Part shown: one piece after another, positions 2,340 through 20,735 of the stretch
Position numbering within the stretch: the stretch's first letter is position 1
Layout: the number at the start of each line of letters is the position of its first letter
From: Obrimoposthia wandeli
Taxonomy: Eukaryota
DNA length: 64,000 nucleotides
Assembly: GCA_977020255.1 (NCBI GenBank)
Contig: CDROCS010004705.1
Location: forward strand, 1 to 64,000
Direction of reading: 5' to 3'
Notes under the pieces: generated by a model
The model's input: only the letters and a program-made list of their open reading frames with translations
Databases searched by the model: none
Told to the model about the DNA's origin: nothing
Made by a program: the position numbers and the translations under genes

Positions 2340-3143
2340 TCACGTTTCTATAGAGCAATCAACCTGGGTGGGATCTGAATCATAATCGCCATTCTTACCT
2401 AAACTGATCAGTGCAATGCATCCATTGATACTGCTTTCTAAGCAATCAGGATATAGATCATTTTTGAAACTTGTTTCATAGCGATAAGCTTGTCCTGCAT
2501 AATCATTAGCGATATTGCTTCTAGTAGAGGCCGATTTATCCTTCTTGGTTTTTACAATAGCGAAACATGAGGAAGTAGAGGTAAAAGTTAATGCTTGTTT
2601 AAAAGGATCTTGAATTGCTGAATATGAATTATCAGCATTTAAATTCCCTAAGGCTTCTAGCTCGCAATTACTTTGAGGATCAGAGCCTTTAAAATGCATT
2701 CTTTGTTGTGTGTTTCTAGTCATATAAGGGCCGAACCAGCCGATAGCTGAATCGATGTTTTGTGGAGATACTGGTGTGTCACAATCGCTGGCCTTACATT
2801 GGAGCGGCTGTGTATAAAATCAAAAATTCTGATCTTCCGATACAGTAATTGGATATTGATATGCATATTTACCATCTGGCGCAGCAAATATTCCAGTCTT
2901 TGGAAAATACCCCGTATCACTTTTAAACTTATAAATAGCATCGGCAATATTACTCATTTCAACATGCACCAGCTCTTCACGAGCTTTTTCGTTATAGCCG
3001 CCTACTGCTGAAGTGGCGATGCCGGCTATTGCCGCTAGAATGGAAACGACGACGAGTAACTCTAACAGCGTGAAGCCTTGCTGTGATGCTTTTAGCTTAA
3101 CGGTTGCTTTTTTATGAGTGTCTAAATTATGTATTAATTTCAT
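2340..3143 (-). pseudogene. Minor pilin/pseudopilin (GspG-like) with an in-frame TGA
   Basis: QQG|FTLLELLVVV motif and RBS GAGG. The frame continues past TGA (2820-2822) as FYTQPLQC...GWFGPY into ORF 2340..2723. Confidence 0.8.
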
Positions 3144-4482
3144 GCTCAACCTCTTTCTCTGCAGTGCTCTGGTTATCGTCAAGTTGCGCTTGTAATACGC
3201 GAGGTTCTCTGACTTTGAAGCCTTCTAATAGCCCCAGCACGCGCTCAACTTCATCGATATCGGTAATGCCTTGTTTTACTTTATTTAAAGCACTGCGGCG
3301 TAAATCTTGAATGTTTTGGCTTTGTGCATAAGTTTCTATTTGTGAATCACTAGCACCTTGTGCAATCAACTCTGCCAAGTCTTTGGTGATAGGTAGCACT
3401 TGATAGATACCGATACGCCCTTTATAACCTGATTCATTGTTTTGAATGCGCGCCCTAAACAAGGTTAGATCAGGGATCTCTTGCTCAGTGAAACCTAATG
3501 CCAGCAAACGATCAGTCGGCACTACAATTTCTTCAGCGTTTTCAGGGTCAAGTTTGCGTAATAAACGCTGACTTATCACTAAGCTAACCGTAGAGGCAAT
3601 GTCATGTGGGGCAACACCTAAGTTGCGTAGGCGCATCACTGATTTTGCCGCCGTATTAGCGTGTAGTGTCGATAAAACTAAGTGGCCGGTGTGGGCGGCT
3701 TTGATAGCGGTATCGATGGTTTCGCTGTCGCGCATTTCGCCCAGCATAATGACATCAGGGTCTTGGCGTAAAATGGTTCTAGCAGATTCTGCAAAACTTA
3801 AACGCTCATCAATACTAATTTGGTTGATGCCATTAAGGTCTATCTCAACAGGATCTTCTACTGTGTAAATGCTGCGTGGTTGCTGGTTTATGTGTTTTAT
3901 TAAGGTATATAAAGTCACAGTCTTACCACTACCTGTAGGGCCTGTCACTAACACCATGCCTTGCAGTTGGCTAATAGCGTTGCGTATAGCGGGTAGCTGT
4001 TGTGTCTCAAAACCTAGTAGGTTTAAATCTAACAGTGTTTCGGGCAAATAAAGTAAGCGCAGCACAATAGTTTCACCGTGCAAGGTAGGAATAGTTGAGC
4101 ATCTAAAATCTAAACCTTGTTGCTCGCTTAACAATAATTTAAAGCGCCCGCCTTGTGAAATACGGTGTTCAGAAATATCTAAACCGGCAATGACTTTAAT
4201 ACGCGCTGCTATTTGCTGGCCAAAACCTCTGGGCATTTCAGCTGTTTCTCGCATCACACCATCCACACGCATACGAATGCGAAAGCGTTCGGCGAAAGGT
4301 TCAAAGTGTATATCTGATGCACCAAAATTTATCGCATCTAATAACGTGCGATTCAGATACAAAGGGACACTCATTTCTTGATGAATCGCTTGTGCATTGT
4401 CAGTGTTATCAATGGTGCTGGCGCTAACGGCGAAATTTAAATTAGCGGGGTCGAGCTTGAGATCTTGTATGGGTAAATTCAT
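3127..4482 (-). CDS. PilB/GspE-family ATPase, short form without tetracysteine motif
   Basis: Walker A GPTGSGKT, EDPVE Asp box, RQDPDVIMLGEMRD, His box TLHAN. Confidence 0.9.
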   Translation of the reverse strand: MNLPIQDLKLDPANLNFAVSASTIDNTDNAQAIHQEMSVPLYLNRTLLDAINFGASDIHFEPFAERFRIRMRVDGVMRETAEMPRGFGQQIAARIKVIAGLDISEHRISQGGRFKLLLSEQQGLDFRCSTIPTLHGETIVLRLLYLPETLLDLNLLGFETQQLPAIRNAISQLQGMVLVTGPTGSGKTVTLYTLIKHINQQPRSIYTVEDPVEIDLNGINQISIDERLSFAESARTILRQDPDVIMLGEMRDSETIDTAIKAAHTGHLVLSTLHANTAAKSVMRLRNLGVAPHDIASTVSLVISQRLLRKLDPENAEEIVVPTDRLLALGFTEQEIPDLTLFRARIQNNESGYKGRIGIYQVLPITKDLAELIAQGASDSQIETYAQSQNIQDLRRSALNKVKQGITDIDEVERVLGLLEGFKVREPRVLQAQLDDNQSTAEKEVEHEINT

Positions 4483-4521: not shown

Positions 4522-5751
4522 CTAACCAGCAGAGACTTTGATCATGGCAGTAAAGAAACCAATGTAGACAAATGCCACCATGCCGCCGACGATAATAGTC
4601 ATCGCGGGTTCTATCATTGATATCATCGCTTTAATACGGGATTCAGCGCTTTGCTGGTAATACTTACCAAGCTCTAACATCACGTGCTCTAGCTCACCGC
4701 TGCGCTCACCAATGCCTGTCATGTGCTGTACCATCAAAGGAATATGAGATTGTTGTAAACCGTAAGCTAAGCTGCGCCCAGCAAGAATTTCACTGCCAGC
4801 TTTATCAAAACAAGCAGCTAAGCGCAGGTTGCCCGTGATGCTGTGCATAACTCGAAGCGCCTCGATTACCGTAAGGCCTGAGCCTAATAGCATTGACATA
4901 GTCCAACCCATTTGAGCCATACCTGAAGTGCGAATGCTAGAGCCTATCAAGGGTGTGTTTAGCAGTATTTTATCAATCACTTTTTTACCGGGCAAAGTGG
5001 TGTAAGCGGCTAATGCGCCAAAGACAACCACCCCAATAGTGATACCTAAAATAGCACCGTAGTTAACTAACCAAGCTGATACATCTAACATGGCTTGGGT
5101 AATAGGCGGCAAGTCAACCGCTTTGCTTTCAAGCATTTTGGCAAACTTTGGCACAATGCCTAAAGATAAACCTAAAAATACTGCAACAGCGGCTGAAAAT
5201 AAGATACCTGGGTAGGTAAGGCTTGAAATGAATTGGCTTTTCACTTGAGCGCTACGCTCTAAGTTATCGGCCAGACGCTCTAGCGTGGTTTGTAGTTCAC
5301 CCGATACTTCGGCGGCGGCAATTAATTTAGCAGCAATTGGTGGAAACATGCCTTTTTGCTGCTCAATAGCGACTGAGAAACTCGCGCCACTTTGGATGCT
5401 CACTAAGCATTTAACCAAGCTGCGTCTAAGTAAGTTGTTCTCGGTCATTTCACCGCAAATTTCTAAACCCTGTGTTAAGGTATTGCCTGAGCGAATCATT
5501 AACGCTAACTGCCTAAACATCATCACTTTTTGAGCTGATTTAGGTGACCGATATTGGCCAGGGCTTAGCTTGCCAAGTAGGTTAAACATCAACTTAAAGG
5601 GATTAAAACCACTGGCAGCAGCTTTGATATTTAAGATGTGCAAAGACTTACTGCGCAACTGAGCGCTCGCTTCATTTACGCTGGTCGCACTAATACGACC
5701 TTGGGTTTCTTTACCTTGTTGATCTAAGGCTTTGTATTTAAAAACGGCCAT
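4522..5751 (-). CDS. pilC: PilC/GspF-family inner-membrane platform protein
   Basis: MAVFKYKALDQQG start, FRQLALMIRSG, GERSGEL and IEP motifs; duplicated T2SSF architecture. Confidence 0.9.
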   Translation of the reverse strand: MAVFKYKALDQQGKETQGRISATSVNEASAQLRSKSLHILNIKAAASGFNPFKLMFNLLGKLSPGQYRSPKSAQKVMMFRQLALMIRSGNTLTQGLEICGEMTENNLLRRSLVKCLVSIQSGASFSVAIEQQKGMFPPIAAKLIAAAEVSGELQTTLERLADNLERSAQVKSQFISSLTYPGILFSAAVAVFLGLSLGIVPKFAKMLESKAVDLPPITQAMLDVSAWLVNYGAILGITIGVVVFGALAAYTTLPGKKVIDKILLNTPLIGSSIRTSGMAQMGWTMSMLLGSGLTVIEALRVMHSITGNLRLAACFDKAGSEILAGRSLAYGLQQSHIPLMVQHMTGIGERSGELEHVMLELGKYYQQSAESRIKAMISMIEPAMTIIVGGMVAFVYIGFFTAMIKVSAG

Positions 5752-5877: not shown

Positions 5878-7476
5878 TTAGGCGTGATATAAAAGCTCTG
5901 CTTCATGCAAAGTGGTCACGCCTTCAAGTACCTTGTTGCGGGCATCCTGCCATAATGTATTTAATAACTCGTCCTTCAGTGCTTGTTGTTTTAATTGCTC
6001 ATCACTGGCATTTTGATGAATAAGTTGTTCTAAATTTTTATTCATCCACAATGTTTCGTAAATACCAACACGTCCACTATAACCACTGCCCAAACACAGT
6101 GAACAGCCGGCTCCTTTGTACAAGGTGAGCGGTGCTTTTACGGCCAATAACGCAATCTCTTGATCACTGGCGGCATAAGGTTGTTGGCAGTGTTTACAGT
6201 TGCGTCTTAACAAACGTTGCGCCACAACACCCACTAAGGTGCTGGCTATTAAGTAGCTCGCGCAGCCGATATCAATTAAGCGGTTAATCGCTGATACCGC
6301 ATTGTTAGTGTGCAAAGTAGACATCACCATATGGCCAGTCATCGCGGCGCGCACCGCTGTTTCAGCGGTTTCTTTATCACGAATTTCACCCACTAACATG
6401 ACATCAGGGTCATGGCGTAAAAACGAGCGAAGCGCGCTTGAGAAGCTCAGTTTTTCAGTGACTTGTATTTGAGAAATACCTTCAATAACTTGCTCAATAG
6501 GGTCTTCAACGGTCATGATATTCATCTTTTGCGCATCTAATTCACGTAGTGATGCATACAAAGTGGTACTTTTTCCGCTACCTGTAGGTCCTGTCACTAG
6601 CACCATGCCATAAGGTTTTTTAATGCCTTGTTGCATGGGTAACAAAAGATGTTGAGGCATACCCAGTTGCGCTAAACGCATGTCCGCTGTGCTTTGCCCT
6701 AAAATACGCAAAGTGGCGCGCTCACCAAAGCGGGTAGGGATAACGGCTACACGCATTTCAATGTCACCGATATCAGCCCAGTTATTGATACGATAAGCAA
6801 AGCCGCCATCTTGCGCAGTATTTTGCTCAGAAATATCCATCCCAGAAAGCACTTTAATACGGCTCATTAACGCGTTGGCTAACTCTTTATCAATAGGGCG
6901 TTCATAATGTTGCAAGCGCCCATCAACACGCACTCTTAATTGCATGCTGTGCTCTAGTGCTTCAAAGTGTAAATCAGTGGCTTGGCGTAAATACGCTTCT
7001 TTCATAATGTCATCAAAGATACTAATGGCATTAAAATCGTTGGCGTATATGCCAAAGTGCTGGCGCAAAATAGATTCAATCATCATAGGGTCAGCTATTG
7101 CTAAGCTAGCTCTTTCATTAAGGCTGCGTTGCACTGTCTCTAAAACCACCTTATCTAAGGGGTCAGCGCTGAGCACTACCAGTTTTTCATCAATACGAAT
7201 CGGTAAAAATAAGCGGCGTAATATCACTTGGCTGTTGAACGGATTAAGCAGTTTGGCTGAAATTTGAAAGTCATCGCGGCTGTAAAAAGGCAGTTGGTGG
7301 CTACTGGCTAAAGCACGGTAAATAGCGCTCATCGGAAAACGCCCTTCGCGACAAATAAGCTCTAAGCTTGATGCATTTTGCTGACGCGCTTTAGTTTTTA
7401 GCGTTGCAACTTTATCAGCAGCCACTAAACCTGCTTGCACAGCAGCATTAATTAATAGTGTTTCTGATACAGCCAT
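5878..7476 (-). CDS. pilB: PilB/GspE-family extension ATPase
   Basis: Walker A GPTGSGKST, RHDPDVMLVGEIRD, TLHTN, zinc motif CKHC...CSLC; N-terminal domain present. Confidence 0.9.
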   Translation of the reverse strand: MAVSETLLINAAVQAGLVAADKVATLKTKARQQNASSLELICREGRFPMSAIYRALASSHQLPFYSRDDFQISAKLLNPFNSQVILRRLFLPIRIDEKLVVLSADPLDKVVLETVQRSLNERASLAIADPMMIESILRQHFGIYANDFNAISIFDDIMKEAYLRQATDLHFEALEHSMQLRVRVDGRLQHYERPIDKELANALMSRIKVLSGMDISEQNTAQDGGFAYRINNWADIGDIEMRVAVIPTRFGERATLRILGQSTADMRLAQLGMPQHLLLPMQQGIKKPYGMVLVTGPTGSGKSTTLYASLRELDAQKMNIMTVEDPIEQVIEGISQIQVTEKLSFSSALRSFLRHDPDVMLVGEIRDKETAETAVRAAMTGHMVMSTLHTNNAVSAINRLIDIGCASYLIASTLVGVVAQRLLRRNCKHCQQPYAASDQEIALLAVKAPLTLYKGAGCSLCLGSGYSGRVGIYETLWMNKNLEQLIHQNASDEQLKQQALKDELLNTLWQDARNKVLEGVTTLHEAELLYHA

Positions 7477-8552
7477 TAGCTAAATCCGCGCTGTAATAAT
7501 TTGTTAAAGCTTTCAGGGTCTTTACATAAACGTTGCGCCGCTTCAATTGTAATTGCTTTGGCAATGGCTAAACGCGCCAGTGCTTGGTCTAACGTTTGCA
7601 TGCCTTGGCGGCTGCTGCTTTCCATCACTGAGTAAATTTGTTTAGATTTTGATGATTCAATTAAATTGGAAACCGCATTGGTCACCATTAAAATCTCAGC
7701 CACTACTTCACGACCATTACCCCGTGCAGAGGGAATAAGGTTTTGTGCAATCACCGCTTTTAGTGCATGGGCAATTCGCTGGCGTGCCACGCTTTGCTCG
7801 TTACCTGGAAAACTACCAATTAAACGTTCCACCACCCCTACTGCGTCATTAGTATGTAAGGTTGAGAACACTAAATGGCCAGTTTCAGCGGCGGTTATAG
7901 CGGTGCGCATGGTATCTAAATCGCGCATTTCACCAATCATAATCACATCAGGGTCTTCACGTAGTGCCGCTTTTACGGCGCTGGGGAAATCAAGCACATC
8001 AGTGTAGAGCTCTCGCTGGTGAACAATAGAGTTGATATTGCTATGCACAAACTCAATTGGGTCTTCTACGGTTAAAATGTGTTTTTCTTGGTTTTCATTA
8101 ATGTCATTTATAATGGCGGTCAAGGTGGTGCTTTTGCCAGAACCTGTGGCGCCGCAGACTAACACTAAGCCGCTTTTAAGGCTGGTTAAATAACTGATTT
8201 GTGGTGGTAACCCTAGCTCTTTAGTGGTTTTTAAACCGCCATCAAGGTAGCGAATAGCCAGTGCAATAGTCCCCATTTGACGATAAATATTAATGCGAAA
8301 ACGAAAACCTTGCGCTGATGAAAACCCCATATCTAAGGTCATATTTTTCTTGAAATACTCGAGATGGTGGGCATTCATTAAGCTGTAGGCCATCGCTTCA
8401 ATGTCATCAGCCGTTAATGGCGTTACATCGATGCGGGTTATTTTGCCATGAATACGATAAGTAGGCGCTAAAGCGTGTGATATATGTAAATCGGACGCTT
8501 CAAGAGAGACGCAATCGTCCATTAGCTGTCGAATATATTGATTGTTATCCAA
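7476..8552 (-). CDS. pilT: PilT/PilU-family retraction ATPase
   Basis: GATGSGKST, LREDPDVIMIGEMRD, AAETGHLVFSTLHT, GMQTLDQAL. Confidence 0.9.
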   Translation of the reverse strand: MDNNQYIRQLMDDCVSLEASDLHISHALAPTYRIHGKITRIDVTPLTADDIEAMAYSLMNAHHLEYFKKNMTLDMGFSSAQGFRFRINIYRQMGTIALAIRYLDGGLKTTKELGLPPQISYLTSLKSGLVLVCGATGSGKSTTLTAIINDINENQEKHILTVEDPIEFVHSNINSIVHQRELYTDVLDFPSAVKAALREDPDVIMIGEMRDLDTMRTAITAAETGHLVFSTLHTNDAVGVVERLIGSFPGNEQSVARQRIAHALKAVIAQNLIPSARGNGREVVAEILMVTNAVSNLIESSKSKQIYSVMESSSRQGMQTLDQALARLAIAKAITIEAAQRLCKDPESFNKLLQRGFS

Positions 8553-8616: not shown

Positions 8617-9261
8617 TTACATTTGCAAATCAAAGGTGATTGCCAATAAGCCGTTATTAGATGCTGCAGTTGCATCATCTTGAATTATGGGTGTAATACT
8701 TAAATTGCGCACAATGCTGTAATAAGGCAATTTAGAAAACTGCTCAGTGAAATTAACAAAGGCAGGGTAAGAGCCTTGGCCGCTCACCCGAAAGATGGGC
8801 CTTTTCTCTAGAAATGCGCGCAACTGTTGGCCATTAAGCGATTTAGGTAGTGGCCTTATTTGCGCATTATCAGTGGTTAAATTGGTAATAATAATGCCTT
8901 GCTCGGCTGCCATACGTGAGAGCTCTAACTTTACTTTTTCTTGTGGTGTAGGTACATCTAATGGCAGCAGCTTAGCGCTATAATTTATTAATTTTCGCTC
9001 TAATATATGCAGCGCTTTCTGCTGGCTATCTAAGCTTTTTTGAGTAACGATGCCATCAATTTCGGGTGTTTTGAAAGTACCTAGGCGTGTCTCTATGCGA
9101 TTAGCTTTACGATTAGCCATTTTTTGCGCTTGAAACATTTCTTCCCACAGTAGTGATGCCAGTAATCCATAGCTGCCAACAATAGTGAATATAATAATAA
9201 ACAACAGTTGCCTGCGCTCTTTTGCTTGCATTGCATAAAAGCGATTTTTTAAGCTAATCAT
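8617..9261 (-). CDS. PilO/GspM-like alignment protein
   Basis: Single N-terminal TM after ERRQLL, coiled coil, ferredoxin-like C-terminus (GSYPAFVNF); follows pilMN. Confidence 0.6.
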   Translation of the reverse strand: MISLKNRFYAMQAKERRQLLFIIIFTIVGSYGLLASLLWEEMFQAQKMANRKANRIETRLGTFKTPEIDGIVTQKSLDSQQKALHILERKLINYSAKLLPLDVPTPQEKVKLELSRMAAEQGIIITNLTTDNAQIRPLPKSLNGQQLRAFLEKRPIFRVSGQGSYPAFVNFTEQFSKLPYYSIVRNLSITPIIQDDATAASNNGLLAITFDLQM

Positions 9262-11275
9262 TAATTTGCACCTCTAGCTCGGTGGCATTGTTAGCGGATT
9301 CTATCGGGGTTTGAGGTAGAGCATTGCGCATTTTGTTACGCAGGTTTGATTGATAATCCAAACTGACTTTTATTTCATATAATTGGTTATCGGTTAGTGC
9401 AACGCTTGAGTGTGTTACTTGGTAATTAAGTGGTTGTAATAAGCTGTTTAAACTATTGATAAACTCATTACCGGTTCGGTTATCTAATGTGTTGGCAGTA
9501 ATAGACCAAAGGTCATTTGATTTAGTGATTTGGGTTAACACTATTTGTGGTGATACAGATAACGCCAAGGTCTTTAAAAACACAGGCGTCACTAGACGGC
9601 GATAACCACGCTCTTTTTCAAGGTCAACCAACATGTTGGTTGTGGCTATCGTTTCACTAGTCACCAAGGCGAAGCTGGTTTTCATATTCTCATTTTGAGT
9701 AAATATAGCGCGCAGCTGTTTTTGTAATTTATCCTCTTTTGAAAACTTTGCCTCTAAGGTTGCTAATCGTTTGGTTTGTACATCAGTATTCCAAAACATC
9801 CAGCTGATAAAACCGATCGCAGCGACCCCTACAATAGAGCCCGTTATCATCATGATTACTTTAGGCTGCAATAGTCGTTGTATGACAGAGACTTTCGCTT
9901 CTTGGCTGTTAATCCAACTTAAACGCGTATTAGGAGTGTGTTTTAAATAATGATTGGCCGCGCCTTGTAAACCTAATAGGGCATCTTTAGAAATGTTAGG
10001 CAGTATCAGTTCGCTTTTAGGTGCACTGAATCGTTGAATATCACATCCTAAACTATTCGCCAGCTCACTCATCAAAGGCGTTAAACTTTGGTTACTACTG
10101 TCAGCGATATAAAGACGGTGTATATCACTGGGTAAAATACCGATTAAATCAAGGCAATCTTGAGCGGTTACTGGGCCAAATTGACGTGCAGCGGTGGTTA
10201 TTTCGGTCACTACATTACGGTTGCCGCTAATCAGTGCGATTTGCTCTTGGTGAATCTCTAATAACAGTTGCTGATCTTGATCACTGTGATGCCAAAGATT
10301 AGCAAACGCGCTACCTAAAGAGGGGTAAAAGGCTTCTAAATGAATATTATTAAGCTTAAAAGCACCAAGCCAGCGACGGCGTACACTTTGGCTAATACCA
10401 CTGACTAACCAGGGGTGGCTACTATCACTGTCTTCTTCTTGTGAAAGTAAAGTTTCATCACTGAGGTTATCTTGTTTAAGCTCACTTGCTTGCCAGCCAT
10501 AGACTAAATCATCGTCAATCGCGACCAGCTTGCCCTGCAAGGTAAAGCACTCTTCTAGTTGCTCTCTGTTGATGTAGCCAAGCTGTACTGCCAAATCACC
10601 AAAGCGGGTCAGTGAGTTAGAACCGCCTTGAGTTTGCCTAAGTTGTAGCTCTTCAACAATTTCATCACGTTGATCAGAGGTTAAATTACCGCGCTCAACC
10701 AGCATTGAACCTATCATCCAATGTTTGTTTTGCTGGCTCATCGCGCCTTCTAGTTCCCAGCGAATCAGCTCTTGCATCTGCTCGTTAGTACGCGGGCGTA
10801 GTGGGCTGACTGGCAATTGTACTAAGGCTGAGACAACAGAGGGAGTCAGTAAAATAGCGTGTTTTGGTAAGCGCTTTTGGTGCTGCTTTAGCTCAGTTAA
10901 CACATCGGCAATTGCACGGGTGAAATCTACCGTGTTAGATTGCGCAACATGAATAATATGTGCTTTTTGTTTGCCGTTTCTGATTAAGGCGCCGCGTAAA
11001 CCAAAGCTGCCTGCCTGAAACGCAATCAGTGAGTAAGACTCGCTCATTAAAGAGGAGAAGTTAGGCAAGCGTAGCGATTTTTTAAGTTTCATCGCGCTAG
11101 CAGCGAGCTCAATATCAAAAGGCTGCTCTTTGGTTTTGCTAAGTGCAGCACTGTCCTTGCTATCAGCTATGGGTGCGCCGCCGCCAGGTGCAAAGGGATT
11201 TTGCATCTCAAAGCTAAATTCAGTACTGCTATGCGCATCATTATGTGATGCTTGTTTAGGTAATACTTTACTCAT
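9254..11275 (-). CDS. PilM-PilN-like fusion with internal MshEN-like motif pair
   Basis: PilM-like N-terminal ~450 aa, TM at about VIMMITGSIVGVAAIGFISWMFW, PilN-like C-terminus; start chosen at the ATG overlapping the upstream stop. Confidence 0.7.
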   Translation of the reverse strand: MSKVLPKQASHNDAHSSTEFSFEMQNPFAPGGGAPIADSKDSAALSKTKEQPFDIELAASAMKLKKSLRLPNFSSLMSESYSLIAFQAGSFGLRGALIRNGKQKAHIIHVAQSNTVDFTRAIADVLTELKQHQKRLPKHAILLTPSVVSALVQLPVSPLRPRTNEQMQELIRWELEGAMSQQNKHWMIGSMLVERGNLTSDQRDEIVEELQLRQTQGGSNSLTRFGDLAVQLGYINREQLEECFTLQGKLVAIDDDLVYGWQASELKQDNLSDETLLSQEEDSDSSHPWLVSGISQSVRRRWLGAFKLNNIHLEAFYPSLGSAFANLWHHSDQDQQLLLEIHQEQIALISGNRNVVTEITTAARQFGPVTAQDCLDLIGILPSDIHRLYIADSSNQSLTPLMSELANSLGCDIQRFSAPKSELILPNISKDALLGLQGAANHYLKHTPNTRLSWINSQEAKVSVIQRLLQPKVIMMITGSIVGVAAIGFISWMFWNTDVQTKRLATLEAKFSKEDKLQKQLRAIFTQNENMKTSFALVTSETIATTNMLVDLEKERGYRRLVTPVFLKTLALSVSPQIVLTQITKSNDLWSITANTLDNRTGNEFINSLNSLLQPLNYQVTHSSVALTDNQLYEIKVSLDYQSNLRNKMRNALPQTPIESANNATELEVQIND

Positions 11276-11849
11276 CAATGGCTTGTGCACCGATAATCAC
11301 TAAACGCGGCCCTTTAGCATAATTATAAATATGCATGGCGTACAACAAGCTGTTAACTGGGGTGGTAATAGTTGAATCAGTGGTTTTGTAAGCTTTGGTT
11401 TTGTGCTTTTTTTGTGCATCAATTAATTGCTGCATCTGTACTGCTGCGCTTTTGGCGACATACACCGCGATTACTTTGTTATCTCCCGCTTGTATAAAAG
11501 CGCTATGGCTAATTTCAGGTAATGGCTGCTCTGATGGCCATAATTGCAAGGCATCATAAACCAGTGAGAATTTGCCGGCTTTAGGTGCTTGCATGATGTT
11601 GGCATTAAATTGAATAGGCGAGGGCGGCAACATTAAGCGCTGCTTCGCTTTAATCATTTTCGCAGGTAACTGGTTGTTATTGATAAAATCTGCCAAGTTG
11701 ATTTTTTTATACTGTTGGGTAATATTTTGTGCGCTAGTGTCAGCAGAGGTTGAAATAGTGTTTTTAGCGGAGCCGTCGGTAGTGGAAGTTTGAGCGTAAC
11801 TAAAACTAGTGCACAAAATACTGAAGGTAAATAAAAAAAGATACTGCAT
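11268..11849 (-). CDS. Hypothetical exported protein of the pilus operon
   Basis: Signal peptide ending SYA; stop overlaps the pilMN start. Confidence 0.7.
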   Translation of the reverse strand: MQYLFLFTFSILCTSFSYAQTSTTDGSAKNTISTSADTSAQNITQQYKKINLADFINNNQLPAKMIKAKQRLMLPPSPIQFNANIMQAPKAGKFSLVYDALQLWPSEQPLPEISHSAFIQAGDNKVIAVYVAKSAAVQMQQLIDAQKKHKTKAYKTTDSTITTPVNSLLYAMHIYNYAKGPRLVIIGAQAIDE

Positions 11850-11928: not shown

Positions 11929-12951
11929 TTAGATAGTGTTACGTGTGCCATCCCACTCGCCTAACTCTTCTTCTTTAGTATCGCCAGCGCCATCAACGAT
12001 AGCAGTAAGTGCTACTTGGTCATTAGGTGTTATGACAGTACCAGCAGTATCTAACGTACCGATATTGAACAGTGCAATAAATCGATTATACTGCTGACCA
12101 GAAACGTGTCTGTATACCGGCACAGAAGTCAAACCACCTAAATCGTTAGCGTTGAATAAGCTAGAAGATGGGCCTAATCCAACAGCCATAAGTGCTGGAC
12201 GGGTTGTAGATGTTACAGGAGTTACGTCAAATAGAACGCCTGCGCCGCCTAATACACGCTCATAGCCACCATTCCAGATAGCAACACTAGTTGTATCTCC
12301 AGCATTTACGACTGCACCTGCCGCATCCAGAATCTCACCGTCTTCATCAAAAGCTACAGAATAGCCGCAGCCATTTGCGAGAGGACTCATAAATATATTA
12401 CCAGCAACTACTGCGTTACCACGCGAGGCAATTAGTGCAGGTATATCACTACAGTCGCCTGCGTCAGCTGGGTCTGCAAGAGCATCAGCATGAAGGTAGC
12501 GTAAGCTATTGATACCACCAGCAGACATTACAGAAGCCACAGCAACTGGAAGTGTAACAACATCGAAGTCAGCAATAGCAATAACATCATTAGGTACTAC
12601 TACCGGTGCTTGGCCATCTGCTGCCGGTGTTTGAAGTAACGCGTCAAAGTTAGTAGGTAGCACATTTCTGTTAAGTACACGGAAGGTACGAATACCTTTG
12701 TTTAACTCATCCATCATTGCTACGTGTGCAGCTGCTGATGCACGTGCATCAGTATCTTGTAGTGCGATAGTCGCAGTACCGGCAATTGCCGCTAAGATAG
12801 CCACTACTACTAATAGCTCTAGTAATGTGAAACCGCCTTGTTTTGCTTTAAGCTTAGTAGCTTTAGCACGAAGGCCTGAATCTGCGATGTCAGATGTGTT
12901 GATTGAAGAGAATTTTGCTTTAAGTTGGGCAATTTTTGCTAAAGAGAACAT
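11929..12951 (-). CDS. Large type IV major pilin-like protein (340-aa prepilin)
   Basis: KQGG|FTLLELLVVVAIL class III signal peptide; RBS ATAGG before ATG 12951; first pilin after the promoter; followed by a hairpin. Confidence 0.85.
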   Translation of the reverse strand: MFSLAKIAQLKAKFSSINTSDIADSGLRAKATKLKAKQGGFTLLELLVVVAILAAIAGTATIALQDTDARASAAAHVAMMDELNKGIRTFRVLNRNVLPTNFDALLQTPAADGQAPVVVPNDVIAIADFDVVTLPVAVASVMSAGGINSLRYLHADALADPADAGDCSDIPALIASRGNAVVAGNIFMSPLANGCGYSVAFDEDGEILDAAGAVVNAGDTTSVAIWNGGYERVLGGAGVLFDVTPVTSTTRPALMAVGLGPSSSLFNANDLGGLTSVPVYRHVSGQQYNRFIALFNIGTLDTAGTVITPNDQVALTAIVDGAGDTKEEELGEWDGTRNTI

Positions 12952-13221
12952 GGTAAACCTATAAGTTAATAAATCGAAAGTTAGTAGACCGTTGACATAA
13001 GCGCAGACTTCCCCCAAGGAAGCTGTGGCAACTTAACCAGTCCGATTTAAAACGCTTCCTTTGGCAGTGTTGATAAATATCCTGCTATTAACACTGTCGT
13101 TTCAGCTGATGTCCTTGTCAGCCTACCTAGTTCTTTTTACCCCCCAAGAGCAATAAAAGAACGTTAAACCTTCCTAAGCTACAGCTTAATGAAAAATAAG
13201 CTGATTGCTTTAAACCTTTCT
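12952..13221 (-). promoter_or_regulatory. 270-nt structured leader upstream of the pilin
   Basis: Four stem-loops (13130-13162, 13105-13122, 13065-13096, 13014-13064); six GGA triplets, two of them in loops. Confidence 0.5.
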
Positions 13222-13482
13222 TTACTTAAGCAAGTCACGCTTTAATAGATGCTTTAATGCTGATTCATTGACTAACGCTTGATCGCAATCAAGTACAAAG
13301 CGATGCTGCTTACCACAGTGAATAATGACTTCTTTTTGACCACGACGCAGAATTTTCATCTCAATACTAAAGTCACCATAACCATCGTGACTAAAAAGCT
13401 CTGAATAGACTTCTATCAGCTTTTCAAACACATCTTTATGTTTAATATCTTGATTAAGTTGAGTGTCTGCTACTTCGTTCAT
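13222..13482 (-). CDS. Small 86-aa protein, first gene of the pilin transcript
   Basis: ATG ~30 nt below the promoter; ordered-looking core LFSHDGYGDFSIEMKILRRGQKEVIIHCGKQHRF. Confidence 0.75.
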   Translation of the reverse strand: MNEVADTQLNQDIKHKDVFEKLIEVYSELFSHDGYGDFSIEMKILRRGQKEVIIHCGKQHRFVLDCDQALVNESALKHLLKRDLLK

Positions 13483-13507: not shown

Positions 13508-13543
13508 GCTAGTGATTATCATTCGTATTTGATTTTTTGTCAA
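13508..13543 (-). promoter_or_regulatory. Strong sigma70 promoter with Fur box over the -10
   Basis: TTGACA (13543-13538), 17-nt spacer, GATAAT (13520-13515). ACGAATGATAATCACTAGC matches the 19-bp Fur consensus at 14/19. Confidence 0.8.
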
Positions 13544-13590: not shown

Positions 13591-15684
13591 CTATGGTTTT
13601 CTCGAGATTAAATACACATAACTAGTATCAGTGATGTTGTTGTTGCTGACATCTTTTGCAGCAAGAAAAGGCTGCTCTCTTGCTGCGCTCAGCCAGCGAC
13701 CAGGTAATGACTGTAAATTGATAGGCTGGCTTACATTGCTGGTGTTTTTAAGTTGAAAAACACTGATGACTAGCTTTTCTTGCTGATAGCTGGCGATAGC
13801 ATTGCTGGTAATGTTTGGGTTGGAAAAAAGCTTAGATGAAGCTGTAGGTAAGGGCGCTGAAACTATGCTGTTATCTTTAGGTCTATTGCCACTCATTGCC
13901 ATCGCGGCGTAGCGATTTAAGTAAAGGTAGCTTTCTTTTTTACTGCGCTTAGCAGTGATTTCTGTTGCGAAAAGCACTAATTTGAGCTTTACTAGCCAGA
14001 TTTTATTAGAAGCATTGCCAGCTTGGTGCCAAGCTGGATTGCTGTTAGGATACGTGCGGGTGATTAGCATAATGTATTGCGATTTACTTTTGCTTTTGCT
14101 TTCAGAGCTGAAGAGTGCCTGTTTACCGGGATGCCGCCAAGGGGAGATCTGGTATAGTACGGGTTGCTAACTCAATATCGCTATTCGACGGTTGTGACAA
14201 TGTTATTTCCCCACCTAAAGCGATAGTGGCACCATTTTTAGCTATTGCGACCGTTCGAATACTAGATTCTTCATAACTTGGCAGGTCTTGCGTTGTGATG
14301 GTGGCGTTTGTGGCATCCCATAGTGGATATTGCAGGAAACCATGCCGCTTTCAATAATGTTATATTATTTGTTGAAAAAAATATCTAATGGTGACTTTTA
14401 CTCCTGCGTACGCTTGATGCTAGGTTGTATTGCTAGGGTATTGCCTATATCTACTTCTTTAACTGATAATGTCCTGTTGTCAGAGCTAATGGTTTGGAGA
14501 GAGAAAATCATACTGTTGCCTGCATCAATTGTTGTGGTTGAAGTTGAAGCAGGTGTTATGCCTGTGGCTATGATTTGTTTGTTGCCAATAAATATTCTAG
14601 CGGGGCGGTTGTTTGATGCTAATAGTAAAGGTTTAGTAATAGTCGTTACTAAATTTGTGCGCTCAAGCGCTTCGAGGCGAAGATTGATGTATCTGCTGTA
14701 AAATTCGTAAAAGCCACCGGTCGCGGCTGCTAGCCCTAATCGTGTTCTTTGAGTATTTCTAAGAATCTCCCCTTCACTTAAAGCGGGGTCATCGTCAAAA
14801 TCTAAACCTAAACTGAAAGATTTGTCGTTTGTATTGGTGATGCGGATGATTTTAGTTTCTAGCAATACTTGTGGCGTAGGTCGATCACTGGTGCGAATTA
14901 ATGAGGCTATTTCGCTCATGGCTTCTTTATCACTAGTACGAACATGAATTAGATTGTGGATGCGGTTAGTGGCAATAAAAATAGGTGTTTGAATGCCTAA
15001 CTTTTTATCGAGATCATTTGCTGAGATATTGCTCGCTTGAGCGTTGCGTAATGCGCCATCGCTTACCTCGCCTTGAGCTTGCTGCTTTATGGTGGCGTTA
15101 CTGGCTTGATCTCTTTGAGTGGTGTCCACCGTCGCAGTTGAACTGTTGCTGGATGAAGTGCTGGTACGGGTGTCAGTTACAGTTGTGTTGCCAGAAACTC
15201 TGAAGCTATCAGATAAACCATCAAAGTCATCTTGCTGGTTTTGCTGTTTAAGGATGACACGCTCACCAAATAAGCTTTGTATTGTTAAGGCGGTGGCGCG
15301 AACATTTTGATGTTTTAGAGTGAATGAGCGAATAGTGTCATTGCGATAAACCACGATGTCGCTCTGGTATTCACCTTTCGTCATAATTAAATAACTGTTG
15401 TTTTCGCTATTTCGGCGATACCAAAGGCCGGTGATGCGCGATAAGGTTTCAACAGCATGTTCAAGGCTGATATTTTGCAATAGTAAATCAACGGTTTTAT
15501 TGCTAGCAGCTTGAGTGACGGTGATATTAGAATTGCTTAAGCTTGATAAAATACGCGCGGCATCACGTATATTGGCCCCTTTAAGCTCAACTCTATCAAG
15601 TTGCACGCCAAAGGCTTGCGTTGCTAGTAGTAATGAAAAAACGCAGATGCTTATTATATTGGTTAAACGTGTTAGGTAAATCAT
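13591..15684 (-). pseudogene. Secretin (PilQ/GspD family) with probable C-terminal DUF3438/TraK-like domain, broken by multiple indels
   Basis: N0/N3 and secretin motifs in 14398..15684. Secretin C-terminal pieces (TVAIAKNGATIALGG, LGGIPV, LFSSES...YIMLIT) lie in three frames in 14071-14326. ORF 13591..14070 is in the original frame. Confidence 0.75.
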
Positions 15685-16257
15685 TTATTGCACCACCATC
15701 TTTTCTTTGTAGCTACCGGTTTCAACGATAATATTTAATTCATTAATTTCTAATATGTGCAGTACAGCTGAAGAGCTACCTACTTGCCTTATACCTACCT
15801 TGTCGCCTACTTTGACAATAAAAGTGCCTTGCCCCTGGATTTTTAATAAGGCTATTTTCTTCTCACCTGATTGCAATATACCCTTAAAGCTCAAAGCGGG
15901 TATCTCGCCTTGAAATTGGGCCGGTGCGCTTTTATTGCTAGGCGCACTGTTAGTAGCAGTTGGCGTGAATAGCGAATCTTTAATGGCTGCATTAGCTGCT
16001 TTAGCATTGGTTAGCGTGTTGGCAAAAGGGTCTCTTGATCTATTCGCAGATCTTTTGTTGAGTTGTTGGTCGATGGCTTGATAGTAAGCTTCTATTGTTT
16101 GTAATGAACTTTGGGTGCCTAAAATTAAGCTGTTGGCATCAGCAAAAGATGATGAGCAAAAACAAGCTAAAATGAACAGGCAGGCAATTTTTGAGCGACG
16201 TATTACGTACCGCTTTGTAGTGGATATTTGCATAGTGTGTTGCGCGCTAGTAGCCAT
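15685..16257 (-). CDS. PilP/GspC-like exported protein
   Basis: Signal/TM segment, RDPF motif, C-terminal beta domain LSFKGILQSGEKKIALL...IVKVGDKV; directly before the secretin. Confidence 0.55.
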   Translation of the reverse strand: MATSAQHTMQISTTKRYVIRRSKIACLFILACFCSSSFADANSLILGTQSSLQTIEAYYQAIDQQLNKRSANRSRDPFANTLTNAKAANAAIKDSLFTPTATNSAPSNKSAPAQFQGEIPALSFKGILQSGEKKIALLKIQGQGTFIVKVGDKVGIRQVGSSSAVLHILEINELNIIVETGSYKEKMVVQ

Positions 16258-16429: not shown

Positions 16430-16474
16430 ATTCTATAGGTTAAAAAATATAAATCAACATGATAATCATTATTA
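16430..16474 (-). promoter_or_regulatory. Fur box overlapping a putative sigma70 promoter for the secretin operon
   Basis: CAACATGATAATCATTATT (16455-16473) matches the Fur consensus at 15/19; minus-strand TTGATT-16-TAGAAT. Confidence 0.7.
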
Positions 16475-16708
16475 TTTGCATTTGTATTGTTTTGTTCTAT
16501 GAGCTGTGGCAAAATCCGCTGGTATTTAAGATTAATGCCTTTTTTGATGTTTGAATTATTTAAGATTAACCTTGCGAGATTGTATGAAATCTCCATATAT
16601 AGATATTTCGAGCTTGTATTGCGGTGTGTCTCAATAAGCTTTAGTTTTAAATTGCGTTAACAGCCTAGCTATACACACTTTAATTATTGAGATTTAGAAA
16701 GCTTCATT

Positions 16709-17937: not shown

Positions 17938-18134
17938 AAAACTTAAGCTTTAAAATTTAAGTTATGCGCTTTTTTATATTGTATTATCAGCGTCCTTGGG
18001 GGATGTGATATTGACAGTAAAAATTTATAGCATTGAAACTTAACATCGCTATCTGTGTGCAATTTTGCTGCGCAGTGCGAGTGGTTTTGTGCTGTTTTTA
18101 TTCACTTGTTAATATTGACCTTAGAGGCCCTCAA

Positions 18135-19652: not shown

Positions 19653-19787
19653 ATAAATAACTATAAATATTTATCTAGCTTCATCCATATTTAAATAAAA
19701 ACTATTCAGACTTTAAGCCGCCCAGTGCATGTTATTAGTAACTGCACTTTGAGCGGCAAGGGTAAAGTTTATTATCAAGGTTGTTTT

Positions 19788-20735
19788 ATGAACGCAGTTT
19801 TTGATGCTCAATCTCATTCTATTTGCCCACTTATGCAACCAGCGGCAAAGCAGTTAAACACACTCGTGCTAGGTAAGGAGCTGCAAATAAAACTCTCTTT
19901 AAGCTGCATATTAGCGGGTGGGCATTTGTTGATTGACGATTTGCCGGGGATGGGTAAAACAGTGCTTTCTCATGCTTTGGCTAAAGTTTTCGGGCTAGAT
20001 TTTAAGCGTGTGCAATTTACGAATGACTTGTTACCCGCTGATTTACTGGGTGCATCCATATATCAGCGTGAAAGCGGCACGTTTAATTTTGTTAAAGGCC
20101 CGGTGTTTTGCGAGCTATTGCTTGCCGATGAAATTAACCGTGCAACACCTAAAACACAAAGCGCGTTACTTGAAGCAATGGAAGAGCGGCAAATCAGTGT
20201 TGAAGGAAAAGCGCTTGCGTTACCTTACCCTTTTATTGTGATAGCCACTCAAAACCCGAATGATCAGTTAGGGACGTCGCCGTTGCCTGAATCACAGCTA
20301 GATAGATTCATGCTGTGTTTGTCGATGGGCTACCCAGACAAAGAGGCAGAGCTCGCTATTTTGGCCGGGCAGAGCCGTCGTGAATTACTGGCACAGCAAA
20401 GTGCGTTGATTGATCTTAAGCAGCTACGAGATTTTCAAGAGCAGTGCAAAGCGATTGAAGTACCAGCATTAGTGTTGGAATACATATACGCACTACTTAC
20501 TTACACACGACAAAGTGAGACTTTCATCGCTGGCTTATCTACACGCGCAGCACTAGCAGTGATTAGTGTAGCGAGAGCTTGGGCGTGGTTAAGTGGTGAT
20601 GCGATATTGATGCCGCATCATGTACAAAGTGTCTTTGCTTATGTGGCAGGGCACCGTTTACAAAATGCACAAGGCAATGGCATTGGCATTGAGAAATGCT
20701 TGGCTATTATTGATCACGTTGAGATTCCAAGATAA
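19788..20735 (+). CDS. MoxR-family AAA+ ATPase
   Basis: DLPGMGKT, RVQFTNDLLPAD, LADEINRA, ATQNP, LPESQLDRF. Confidence 0.95.
   Translation: MNAVFDAQSHSICPLMQPAAKQLNTLVLGKELQIKLSLSCILAGGHLLIDDLPGMGKTVLSHALAKVFGLDFKRVQFTNDLLPADLLGASIYQRESGTFNFVKGPVFCELLLADEINRATPKTQSALLEAMEERQISVEGKALALPYPFIVIATQNPNDQLGTSPLPESQLDRFMLCLSMGYPDKEAELAILAGQSRRELLAQQSALIDLKQLRDFQEQCKAIEVPALVLEYIYALLTYTRQSETFIAGLSTRAALAVISVARAWAWLSGDAILMPHHVQSVFAYVAGHRLQNAQGNGIGIEKCLAIIDHVEIPR

Follow-up and report, generated by a model that had tools for sequence, protein, structure and literature searches.

A stretch of 64,000 nucleotides from the Obrimoposthia wandeli assembly GCA_977020255.1 (contig CDROCS010004705.1, positions 1 to 64,000; hereafter the window) was found to encode a true MshEN_N-type tandem-motif domain, a conclusion on which sequence, profile and two independent structure searches concur. 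In pilus ATPases of the MshE/PilF type, MshEN_N is a bundle of four helices with two motifs and takes up a single c-di-GMP molecule. In the window, the bundle occurs within a PilM-PilN-like protein, which is a new domain architecture, while the receptor domain itself is known. The widespread, unnamed pilus family concerned may, by prediction, read c-di-GMP at its platform and not at its motor, because a motor-type c-di-GMP domain sits in a membrane protein at the base of the machine.

Position and parts of the inserted bundle

A first-pass annotation of the window had proposed a tandem MshEN-like motif at 10535-10717. This interval (minus strand) corresponds exactly to residues 192-252 of the open reading frame 9254-11290, and both peptides were located in the encoded 678-residue protein, namely MIGSMLVERGNLTSDQRDEIVEELQ at residues 192-216 and RFGDLAVQLGYINREQLEECFTLQ at residues 229-252. 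The insert was divided as follows:

10526..10714, minus strand: MshEN_N-like four-helix bundle insert (residues 193-255, secondary structure of the model)
10646..10717, minus strand: motif A, divergent 24-residue MshEN copy (residues 192-215, hhalign register)
10607..10645, minus strand: spacer between the motifs, 13 residues where the canonical length is 5 (residues 216-228)
10535..10606, minus strand: motif B, near-canonical copy (residues 229-252, NF053729 match)

In the model, the helices of the bundle comprise residues 193-199, 205-221, 230-237 and 242-255, with a short spacer helix at 224-227. The insert is flanked by a long helix (169-191) and a beta-strand (262-268). The first helix of the bundle (alpha1) is nearly continuous with the preceding PilM helix (169-191), and the PilM beta-strand follows directly after helix 4, with no alpha/beta MshEN_C (T2SSE_N1) subdomain in between.

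The key residues of motif A, with motif positions in brackets, are M192 (1), G194 (3), G201 (10), R208 (17), V212 (21) and L215 (24). Those of motif B are R229, F230, G231, L245 (17), F249 (21) and Q252 (24). Motif B shows the pattern of the second MshEN_N motif (R/K-h-G, hydrophobic residues at 17 and 21, Q at 24) and passes Wang's relaxed pattern. The first motif of MshEN_N has R/K at position 1, a hydrophobic residue at 17 and a Q-type residue at 24, and motif A instead carries M192, R208 and L215 at these places; the 13-residue spacer likewise replaces the 5-residue spacer of the 53-residue MshEN_N unit. The earlier grading of the second copy as a good fit and the first as a partial one was thus right, motif A being off at positions 1, 17 and 24. 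A weak match to TIGR03029 (EpsG N-terminus) was also observed across both motifs of the insert. No runs of N and no sequence resembling human DNA were encountered.

Homology to MshEN_N

The checks named in the first-pass annotation included an MshEN profile search, a structure prediction and a survey of homologues for the insert. The NCBIfam profile NF053729 (c-di-GMP_motif) matched residues 229-252, with E 7e-6 and 25.7 bits for the whole protein and E 3e-7 and 30.1 bits for the insert alone, both scores lying below the curated cut-off of 38 bits and the match covering profile positions 1-24 only. No match to the full MshEN/GSPII domain PF05157 was obtained on the 678-residue protein. When the homologous inserts were searched, NF053729 matched 25 of 25, with a best E of 1.7e-10.

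Comparison of profiles extended the similarity to both motifs. The insert alignment was matched by hhalign to canonical MshE N-termini with a probability of 96.6% (E 6.9e-10, 59 columns), with both motifs in register and an 8-residue insertion at the spacer. A profile search of the PDB with the insert retrieved MshE 5HTL and, at E 6e-5 and over the two motifs together, PilF GSPII-C. A second, word-based protein search with the insert alone returned only members of the host's own family.

The structure prediction yielded the expected four-helix bundle. An insert-only model of 77 residues reached pLDDT 84.5, and its best Foldseek match among 350,542 chains was MshE 5HTL (prob 0.98-0.99, TMq 0.58-0.65, rmsd 1.8-2.6 A). 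In an exhaustive VIA-align search of 48,161 chains, the top five matches were all GSPII N-subdomains (Z 9.3 to 6.9). Rank 1 was again 5HTL, with Z 9.3 and rmsd 2.8 A over 60 residues at 27% identity, and XpsE 2D28 (Z 7.7), X. citri PilB 7LKM (Z 6.9) and PilF GSPII-A were ranked close behind the binders. The fold is superposable on MshE residues 1-64, with the tandem 24-residue motifs in register, as in MshEN_N.

It is extremely improbable that the bundle, as an amphipathic helical repeat, resembles MshEN by coincidence and without common descent. Short helical motifs are common, the Foldseek E against 5HTL is weak (0.35-0.5) for a model of 77 residues, and the Pfam scan found nothing. Such a coincidence is nevertheless effectively refuted by the NF053729 matches in all 25 inserts, by the hhalign result with both motifs in register and by the first ranks of MshE, PilF, XpsE and PilB N-subdomains in both structure searches, the exhaustive one included.

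A second match to NF053729, in a 733-residue open frame (726-residue ORF) on contig C4901, was examined and set aside. It belongs to a CheA kinase with an internal MshEN_N, which is a known architecture and not a relative.

Host protein

The protein that carries the insert was also described in the first-pass annotation, as a PilM-PilN fusion. For the PilM part, this description was borne out by structure (Foldseek and VIA-align to PilM) and not by sequence family; the PilN-like part is a predicted one. The following parts were distinguished:

9254..11290, minus strand: bitopic PilM-PilN-like fusion, host of the insert, GspL-like layout (678-residue ORF)
9896..11062, minus strand: actin-like (PilM/FtsA-type) cytoplasmic domain, insert included (approximately residues 77-465, structural alignment to PilM)
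9791..9865, minus strand: predicted membrane-spanning start of a long helix (approximately residues 476-500, hydrophobic run; boundaries approximate)
9320..9541, minus strand: predicted C-terminal alpha/beta periplasmic domain, PilN/PilO-type ferredoxin-like (approximately residues 584-657, model)

The AF2 model of the whole protein (mean pLDDT 84) shows a PilM-type actin-like domain followed by a membrane helix, a coiled coil and an alpha/beta domain. A continuous helix at 476-578 contains the predicted membrane span, and the C-terminal part has the order beta-beta-alpha-beta-beta. PilM structures 5EOY, 5EOU and 2YCH were the best Foldseek matches (E 7e-10 to 7e-9). VIA-align gave Z 18.1-18.3 against PilM, with 272-279 residues aligned over the model range 77-465, and Z 12.3-12.6 against EpsL. 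Approximately 100 residues of this span were left unaligned to PilM, which fits the inserted bundle together with an acidic loop.

The Pfam scan of the 678-residue protein returned zero matches at E up to 0.1, the PilM family PF11104 included, so the PilM assignment rests on predicted structure. The closest family-named Atlas clusters were PilN (PF05137) and PilM_2+PilN. Alignment of the host family to five canonical PilM_2 proteins of the same assembly by hhalign was weak (probability 11.6%, 54 columns only), too weak for mapping by sequence; the insertion point was therefore placed from the secondary structure of the model and the residues unaligned in VIA-align. On this basis, the insertion site is taken to be PilM subdomain 1C. 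The host protein is, as judged from its predicted fold and without any sequence-family match, a PilM-PilN-like fusion, and it is the probable stator or platform protein of a distinct type IV pilus-like machine.

Gene cluster and partner ATPases

Three genes downstream of the fusion on the same strand were distinguished:

5878..7476, minus strand: PilB-like assembly ATPase, 532 residues, cognate (Pfam T2SSE, 1e-115)
7476..8552, minus strand: PilT-family retraction ATPase (TIGR01420, 1.5e-121, above cut-off)
8617..9261, minus strand: 214-residue protein directly downstream of the fusion, in the PilO position (by position only)

The neighbours of the fusion gene encode PilB, PilT, PilC, a secretin and pilins, as in a type IV pilus cluster, and a third ATPase of the pilus family, an N-terminally short T2SSE ATPase, was also found. 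The same gene order was observed in Neptunomonas, Colwellia, Nitronauta and one metagenomic relative. The 214-residue protein has no Pfam or NCBIfam match, and its position is kept in all related clusters.

The N-terminus of the PilB-like ATPase carries a GSPII fold signature, with an MshEN PF05157 match at residues 60-142; this match is the non-binding C-terminal subdomain. NF053729 did not match residues 1-100. The earlier statement that the PilB N-terminus lacks RLG is right for this protein, and the relaxed c-di-GMP motif was present in none of the cognate PilB-like ATPases of the 35 clusters examined. The first-pass annotation had proposed that c-di-GMP input has moved to the alignment complex. 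The PilB-like ATPases of these clusters resemble ordinary PilB proteins, which are not known to carry the motif; nothing therefore shows a transfer of the motif from ATPase to PilM.

Sources of the signal were searched for as well. No ORF containing GG[DE]EF was found in the window, and a relative was found to carry a GGDEF-EAL gene at a distance of 9 kb. GGDEF matches are present in the whole assembly; they are not assignable to this bacterium because the assembly (1.35 Gb) combines the DNA of many organisms. Dual iron and c-di-GMP control had also been proposed in the first-pass annotation. In the window, the 19-bp Fur consensus of E. coli was not matched even when three mismatches were allowed, and only looser Fur-like sequences were seen upstream.

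Conservation across homologues

Approximately 70 homologues of the host protein were collected (at least 68 sequence clusters), all of them unnamed, annotated as 'hypothetical' and without Pfam matches. They span at least 34 species and at least five phyla, from Oceanospirillales to Planctomycetota; Neptunomonas japonica DSM 18939, Motiliproteus coralliicola C34, Pontibacterium sinense N1Y112 and Neptuniibacter are cultured relatives. The survey for the insert, another of the proposed checks, found it in 33 of 34 species loci, Planctomycetota and Nitrospirota included, and the bundle is among the best conserved parts of the host family. The spacer has 13 residues in 58 of 69 homologues, within a range of 11-19.

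In motif A (n = 69), position 1 is occupied by L in 43, M in 13, K in 6 and R in 1 of the homologues. Position 3 is G in all 69 (G194, invariant), position 17 is R in 65 and position 24 is L in 62. Wang's relaxed motif was found in motif A in none of the 69 homologues; RLG or RIG occurs there in deep-branching members and in P0055. P0055 shows RLG in motif B as well, and a planctomycete member combines RLG or RIG in motif A with Val at position 17.

The residues of motif B (n = 69) are kept as R in 65, F in 66, G in 68, L in 61, F in 60 and Q in 68, and its R, G and Q are retained at 65-68 of 69 down to an overall identity of approximately 25%. The relaxed motif was recognised in motif B of just 27 of the 69, chiefly owing to loss of the turn glycine at position 10. 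Four residues, W191, R200, E247 and C248, are invariant in the family and have no counterpart in MshE; they may belong to a contact surface for another protein and not to a ligand site.

Possible c-di-GMP sensing at the stator

The Arg and Gln of the motif have no structural role in MshE and are lost from non-binding ND0 domains. The MshEN_C subdomain supplies a single ligand contact in MshE and strengthens binding in PilF. The inserted bundle is tentatively read as a putative c-di-GMP sensor on the PilM-PilN-like stator, and the retention of the ligand-contacting positions of motif B in 60-68 of 69 homologues was counted as a sign of selection in favour of this reading, as was the complementary absence of the motif from the 35 PilB-like ATPases. 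Against binding stand the deviations of motif A at positions 1, 17 and 24, the low pass rate of motif B under the relaxed motif, the 13-residue spacer, the NF053729 score below the cut-off, the near continuity of alpha1 with helix 169-191, the family-specific invariant residues and the absence of the MshEN_C subdomain.

In MshE, positions 1, 17 and 24 of the first motif contact the first guanine or its phosphate, and changes of Arg9 and Gln32 shifted affinity less than 5-fold (PMC5013675). PilF GSPII-B, which has Lys and Leu at position 1, reaches 6 nM for c-di-GMP; replacement of one Gln by Glu weakens binding approximately 100-fold without abolishing it, and the apo helix alpha1 is one turn longer and unwinds upon binding (PMC11731258). 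MshEN_N on its own binds; in PilF GSPII-A, the site is closed off by an alpha1 that is longer and more stable, and binding was lost when position 1 of one motif was Ser (PMC12002112).

According to the proposed mechanism, the bundle would still bind a cyclic dinucleotide, most likely c-di-GMP. The second half-site would be intact (R229, F230, the G231 backbone, L245, F249 and Q252, plus I193 from motif A), and the first would be a remodelled one, with G194 kept, L/M in place of Arg at position 1, Arg208 in place of Leu at 17 and the Gln at 24 lost. Affinity would probably be micromolar, not nanomolar. A ligand held at the stator could then tune the docking or the work of the PilB-like, PilT-like and third ATPases, and pilus assembly would be coupled to c-di-GMP without a sensor on the motor.

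There is real room for a degenerate, nucleotide-free MshEN_N/ND0 that serves as a protein docking or spacing module on the stator. Its partner might be the N-terminal domain of one of the three ATPases (PilB-like, PilT-like or third) or a small adaptor, which would make it comparable to the Xanthomonas PilB ND0 that binds PilZ. The failure of motif A to pass the relaxed motif in 69 of 69 homologues, the long spacer, the four family-specific invariant residues and the proximity of the non-binders XpsE 2D28, X. citri PilB 7LKM and PilF GSPII-A to binders in the structure ranking all agree with such a role, and the ND0 of X. citri PilB sets an example of it (PMC8389850). In PilF GSPII-A, the full domain did not regain binding once the consensus had been restored (PMC12002112). 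Known non-binding ND0s, and the PilB N-termini of the same clusters, however, lose R-h-G and the terminal Gln, whereas motif B keeps its R, G and Q even in distant homologues and G194 is invariant. Under pure docking, the retention of precisely those residues that contact guanine and phosphate would have no explanation.

Of the two half-sites, one alone is canonical; the changes in the other are conserved and not random (R208 in 65 and L215 in 62 of 69). A different or asymmetric nucleotide, such as 3'3'-cGAMP, pGpG or another cyclic dinucleotide, could accordingly place its guanine at motif B and its other moiety at motif A, and a measurable but weak affinity of MshEN_N for cGAMP has been reported (PMC5013675). 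This was judged improbable: guanine O6/N7 are recognised by a backbone-amide pocket that requires the position-3 glycine, which is invariant in motif A too, no neighbouring gene suggests a cGAMP synthase, and the idea is speculative.

Because PilF binds with Lys or Leu at position 1 or with one Gln lost, sensing of c-di-GMP was preferred with reserve, and nucleotide-free docking was kept as a substantial alternative. A more elaborate version of c-di-GMP sensing appears rather unlikely as a whole. In it, c-di-GMP on the stator bundle would gate which of the three ATPases (PilB-like, PilT-like or N-terminally short T2SSE) docks, and the bundle might pair in trans with the N1 subdomain of the ATPase to form a 'split MshEN', the stacking Arg having moved from position 1 to 17 in a re-engineered first half-site.

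In all described cases, c-di-GMP controls type IV pili via the extension ATPase, through MshEN on MshE, PilB2, PilF and M. xanthus PilB, or via soluble adaptors, through FimX and PilZ (PMC11656802). If true, an MshEN_N bundle in a PilM-type stator would be a third c-di-GMP entry point to pili. The insert also gives a first clue to function for a large family that lacks any annotation and defines a distinct pilus-like gene cluster, and the first half-site of the insert (L/M at 1, Arg at 17, Leu at 24) offers a test case for the c-di-GMP recognition rules under study in PilF.

Comparison with known systems

No MshEN_N insert in PilM or GspL was found reported, and neither Supplementary Table 4 of Wang et al. 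2016 (PMC5013675) nor the 2024 review of PilB regulation (PMC11656802) lists PilM, GspL or any pilus platform protein with MshEN_N. A platform protein would be a new partner among the known architectures of the MshEN receptor (PMC5013675, Supplementary Table 4). The host protein shares its actin-like cytoplasmic domain with PilM (2YCH, 5EOU, 3JC8) and T2SS GspL/EpsL, and this domain is predicted to be joined, in the manner of GspL, via one membrane helix to a periplasmic PilN-like part. In contrast to PilM and GspL, it has no PF11104 sequence match and carries an MshEN_N insert of approximately 65 residues.

The insert resembles the MshEN_N of Vibrio cholerae MshE (5HTL; Wang et al. 2016, PMC5013675) in its four-helix bundle with two tandem 24-residue motifs and in the R-h-G, L, h, Q pattern of motif B. 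It differs in being internal to a PilM-like protein, whereas that of MshE is at the N-terminus of the ATPase, in its spacer (13 versus 5 residues), in lacking MshEN_C and in motif A, where positions 1/17/24 are L/M, R and L versus R, L and Q.

PilF GSPII-B and GSPII-C are naturally occurring MshEN domains whose position 1 is not Arg (Lys/Leu in GSPII-B, Pro in motif II of GSPII-C) and which bind c-di-GMP all the same; GSPII-C was the best profile match over both motifs. Unlike the insert, the PilF domains belong to the ATPase, retain a hydrophobic residue at position 17 as well as the two Gln residues, and possess a C-terminal subdomain.

MshEN_N-only architectures comprise EpsG-type tyrosine kinases, CheA (internal MshEN_N), CheX, REC and M23 peptidase (Wang et al. 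2016, PMC5013675, Supplementary Table 4). As in these proteins, the four-helix subdomain occurs here as a lone module, and even as an internal insert, as in CheA. The ND0 of Xanthomonas citri PilB (7LKM; PMC8389850) has the same four-helix fold (Z 6.9); its motif residues are lost, whereas the insert described here retains those of motif B.

Identity and Fold of the Insert

The 678-aa protein encoded at 9254–11290 on the minus strand contained both peptides in which the first-pass annotation had recognized a tandem MshEN-like motif, at residues 192–216 and 229–252, and the interval 10535–10717 (minus strand) corresponded exactly to residues 192–252. This interval encodes an MshEN motif, as profile matching, a PDB profile search and profile–profile comparison agreed. 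The two 24-residue units are referred to here as motif A (residues 192–215) and motif B (residues 229–252).

The NCBIfam model NF053729 (c-di-GMP_motif) matched residues 229–252 with E-values of 7e-6 (25.7 bits) for the whole protein and 3e-7 (30.1 bits) for the insert alone, both scores lying below the curated cut-off of 38 bits and the match covering only profile positions 1–24 of 53. The same model matched all 25 homologous inserts tested, with a best E-value of 1.7e-10. An insert profile searched against the PDB retrieved V. cholerae MshE (5HTL) as well as Thermus thermophilus PilF GSPII-C, the latter over both motifs (E 6e-5). When the inserts were compared with the N-termini of canonical MshE proteins encoded in this assembly, the probability was 96.6% (E 6.9e-10, 59 columns), with motif A placed on motif I, motif B on motif II, and a spacer insertion of 8 residues.

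The insert forms a bundle with predicted helices at residues 193–199, 205–221, 230–237 and 242–255. For the insert modelled by itself in AlphaFold (pLDDT 84.5), the best Foldseek match among 350,542 chains was MshE 5HTL (probability 0.98–0.99, rmsd 1.8–2.6 Å), the E-value being weak for so small a domain. In an exhaustive alignment against 48,161 representative chains, the first five places were all taken by GSPII N-subdomains, with Z values of 9.3, 8.7, 7.7, 7.5 and 6.9 for MshE, PilF GSPII-B, XpsE, PilF 6F8L and X. citri PilB, respectively.

The Host Protein

A Pfam scan of the 678-aa protein gave no match, and its 68 homologues were all labelled 'hypothetical', none with a precomputed Pfam domain. 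The full-length model, built on a 69-sequence alignment (mean pLDDT 84), showed an actin-like domain, then a long helix beginning as a hydrophobic membrane segment (residues ~476–500), a coiled coil up to residue 578, and a β-β-α-β-β domain. Foldseek ranked PilM structures first (E 7e-10 to 7e-9), ahead of FtsA and of the GspL/EpsL cytoplasmic domain. VIA-align gave Z values of 18.1–18.3 to PilM (272–279 residues aligned, model range 77–465), 16–18 to FtsA and 12.3–12.6 to EpsL, and by language-model features the neighbours of the protein were PilN and PilM_2+PilN clusters. Judged by predicted structure, the earlier label of a PilM-PilN fusion is a fair description; hhalign of the family against canonical PilM was insignificant.

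In the model, the bundle was located between helix 169–191 and strand 262–268. Their presumed counterparts in ordinary PilM are the 'EL..I..EA' helix and the 'LDF' strand after it, which would put the insert in subdomain 1C.

The Pilus Gene Cluster

The gene belongs to a minus-strand pilus cluster, listed below in transcription order.

15685–16257, minus: PilP-like gene, first in the cluster
13591–15684, minus: secretin with DUF3438 tail, second
13222–13482, minus: 86-aa ORF between secretin and pilin, no family match
11929–13017, minus: large pilin, 5' of the 193-aa ORF
minus: 193-aa ORF, between the large pilin and the 678-aa protein
9254–11290, minus: 678-aa PilM-PilN-like protein carrying the insert
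8617–9261, minus: 214-aa protein in the PilO position
7476–8552, minus: PilT
5878–7476, minus: PilB-like ATPase
4522–5751, minus: PilC
3127–4482, minus: N-terminally short T2SSE ATPase, 3' of PilC
minus: minor pilins, end of the cluster

This order was kept in Neptunomonas, Colwellia, Nitronauta and one metagenomic relative. The secretin was not one open frame, with two frame changes inside the Secretin core relative to the closest homologue: residues 27–431, 459–494 and 517–689 of the relative's 698-aa secretin aligned in frames −3 (15648–14416), −2 (14311–14204) and again −3 (14115–13594), respectively, with six stops in frame −3 between the aligned segments. In relatives, the secretin is a single gene of 698–775 aa (Secretin + DUF3438), and the interruption reflects either a pseudogene or two assembly indel errors. 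All other cluster genes were intact, with 52–89% identity to the closest relative's counterparts.

The 86-aa ORF was 85% identical to its counterpart there, a value exceeded in the cluster by PilT alone, and a small ORF also occupied this position in Neptunomonas and Colwellia. The ATPase at 3127–4482 (451 aa, T2SSE family, Walker A at residue ~180) had no long N-terminal domain, and most related clusters keep it 3' of PilC; the machine thus has three ATPases. The major pilin candidate was unusually large (362-aa ORF; 336–357 aa in the same position in relatives), and its prepilin methylation motif at residues 58–82 implies that the leader is long or that the true start lies further into the ORF.

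A DHOR (di-haem peroxidase-like) gene and a MoxR AAA ATPase adjoined the cluster at 18033–23967 (plus strand). In the compared neighbourhoods of relatives (extracted loci L011, 1–4324, and L012, 2484–6616), DHOR, MoxR and transglutaminase-like genes also flanked the Neptunomonas cluster, and MoxR and transglutaminase-like genes lay between the secretin and pilin genes of Colwellia. The ORF at 21703–23967 (plus strand) occupied the equivalent position. Conservation of this neighbourhood is suggested.

Iron control had also been proposed. No site within three mismatches of the 19-bp E. coli Fur consensus was found in the 64-kb window; looser Fur-like sequences occurred upstream of the 86-aa ORF (~13508–13525, ~14/19 consensus positions by eye) and upstream of the cluster, near 16460–16480.

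Conservation and Distribution

The insert was among the best-conserved regions of the protein in the 69-sequence alignment.

Residues at key motif positions (counts of 69 sequences)
Position 1, canonical R: motif A L 43, M 13, K 6, R 1; motif B R 65
Position 2, canonical L: motif A I 60; motif B F 66
Position 3, canonical G: motif A G 69; motif B G 68
Position 10, canonical G: motif A G 68; motif B G 31
Position 17, canonical L: motif A R 65; motif B L 61
Position 21, canonical L: motif A V 46, L 18; motif B F 60
Position 24, canonical Q: motif A L 62; motif B Q 68

W191, R200, E247 and C248 were near-invariant and family-specific, and the spacer between the motifs was 13 residues long in 58/69 sequences. 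The relaxed pattern of Wang et al. (PMC5013675) matched motif B in 27/69 sequences, failing mostly at the turn glycine, and motif A in none. The earlier grading, with a good fit for the second copy and a partial one for the first, is correct.

When one genome per species was scanned with three patterns, the family was found in 34 species, and the insert was recognizable in 33 of them, a sample leaning to insert-bearing members because one pattern was derived from the insert; in the exception, a Lysobacterales fragment, it was degenerate. The closest relative was Oceanospirillales MAG-10 (73% identical). Hosts included Oceanospirillales, Colwellia, Litorilituus, Methylophaga, Methylophilaceae, Hyphomicrobiales, Nitrospina, Nitrospirota, Gemmatales and Candidatus Anammoxibacter. 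Planctomycete members carried RIG or RLG in motif A with Val at position 17, and one homologue (P0055) had RLG in both motifs, so the ancestral insert was probably nearer the canonical form, the gammaproteobacterial branch having lost the position-1 Arg with an Arg present at position 17.

The Partner ATPase

The PilB-like ATPase indeed lacked RLG at its N-terminus: NF053729 found no match in residues 1–100 of the PilB-like ATPases of five clusters, and not even one copy of the relaxed motif occurred in the long-N-terminus ATPases of 35 clusters. A stator with the motif and a motor lacking it is thus the pattern throughout the family. The Pfam MshEN match at residues 60–142 of the window's PilB-like ATPase corresponded to the non-binding subdomain, TIGR02538 matched weakly, and these N-termini look like ordinary PilB, which is not known to carry an MshEN motif. 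The supposed movement of the motif from ATPase to stator is not demonstrated by any data here.

Potential for c-di-GMP Binding

In MshE, each guanine is held between its own motif's position-1 Arg and a Leu triangle to which that motif contributes positions 17 and 21 and the partner motif position 2; O6 and N7 are read by main-chain amides at positions 3 and 4, and the position-24 Gln contacts ribose and phosphate (PMC5013675). On this map, the second-guanine site was complete (R229, I193, L245, F249, G231, Q252). In the first-guanine site, G194, V212 and F230 were kept, with M192 in place of Arg, R208 of Leu and L215 of Gln.

Several published results favour binding. PilF GSPII-B, whose position-1 residues are Lys and Leu, binds at 6 nM, its single Gln-to-Glu mutants retain 0.5–1 µM affinity, and the first turn of its α1 unwinds upon ligand binding (PMC11731258). 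Changes of MshE Arg9 and Gln32 cost less than fivefold (PMC5013675), and the N-subdomain alone suffices (PMC12002112). On the other side, restoring the consensus does not make PilF GSPII-A bind, owing to inter-subdomain contacts and an α1 that is elongated and capped, and Ser at position 1 of one motif abolished binding in PilF (PMC12002112). In the predicted model, α1 of the insert runs on almost directly from helix 169–191. Arg at position 17 has no known tested precedent. The insert may bind c-di-GMP, a tentative reading set slightly short of an even chance.

A nucleotide-free docking role, for which X. citri PilB ND0-PilZ provides a precedent (PMC8389850), is a credible, somewhat less probable alternative. 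The balance is tipped toward a ligand-binding role by what has been retained over very deep divergence, namely motif B's solvent-exposed Arg and Gln and the position-3 Gly of both motifs. That the ligand is another nucleotide appears improbable.

The source assembly (1.35 Gb, 6,912 contigs) is mixed or host-plus-microbes; its numerous separate bacterial contigs reach several Mb in some cases. Its more than 150 GGDEF matches and dozen MshE-type ATPases are not assignable to the bacterium of the window and are no measure of that bacterium's own c-di-GMP enzymes.

Comparison with Known Architectures

The MshEN_N-only proteins of Wang et al. comprise tandem MshEN_N, REC, EpsG-type kinases, CheX, M23 peptidase, adenylate cyclase, CheA and TrxB (PMC5013675). 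A 726-aa CheA-type histidine kinase with an internal tandem motif (IRLGEMLIAIG... and KPIGEILIDQN...), encoded by a different bacterium of the assembly (locus L009, 6066–8246, minus strand, contig C4901), belongs to an architecture already on that list.

The list holds no PilM, GspL or any platform protein (PMC5013675), and searches of open-access literature for MshEN together with PilM, and for MshEN_N, found no description of such a fusion. In a 2024 review of PilB control, c-di-GMP input occurs via the ATPase N-terminus or FimX/PilZ only, and PilM is a passive stator socket (PMC11656802). Set against this open-access record, a PilM-type protein with an MshEN_N insert is a new domain architecture, and MshEN_N in a stator protein is likely a new input point for c-di-GMP.
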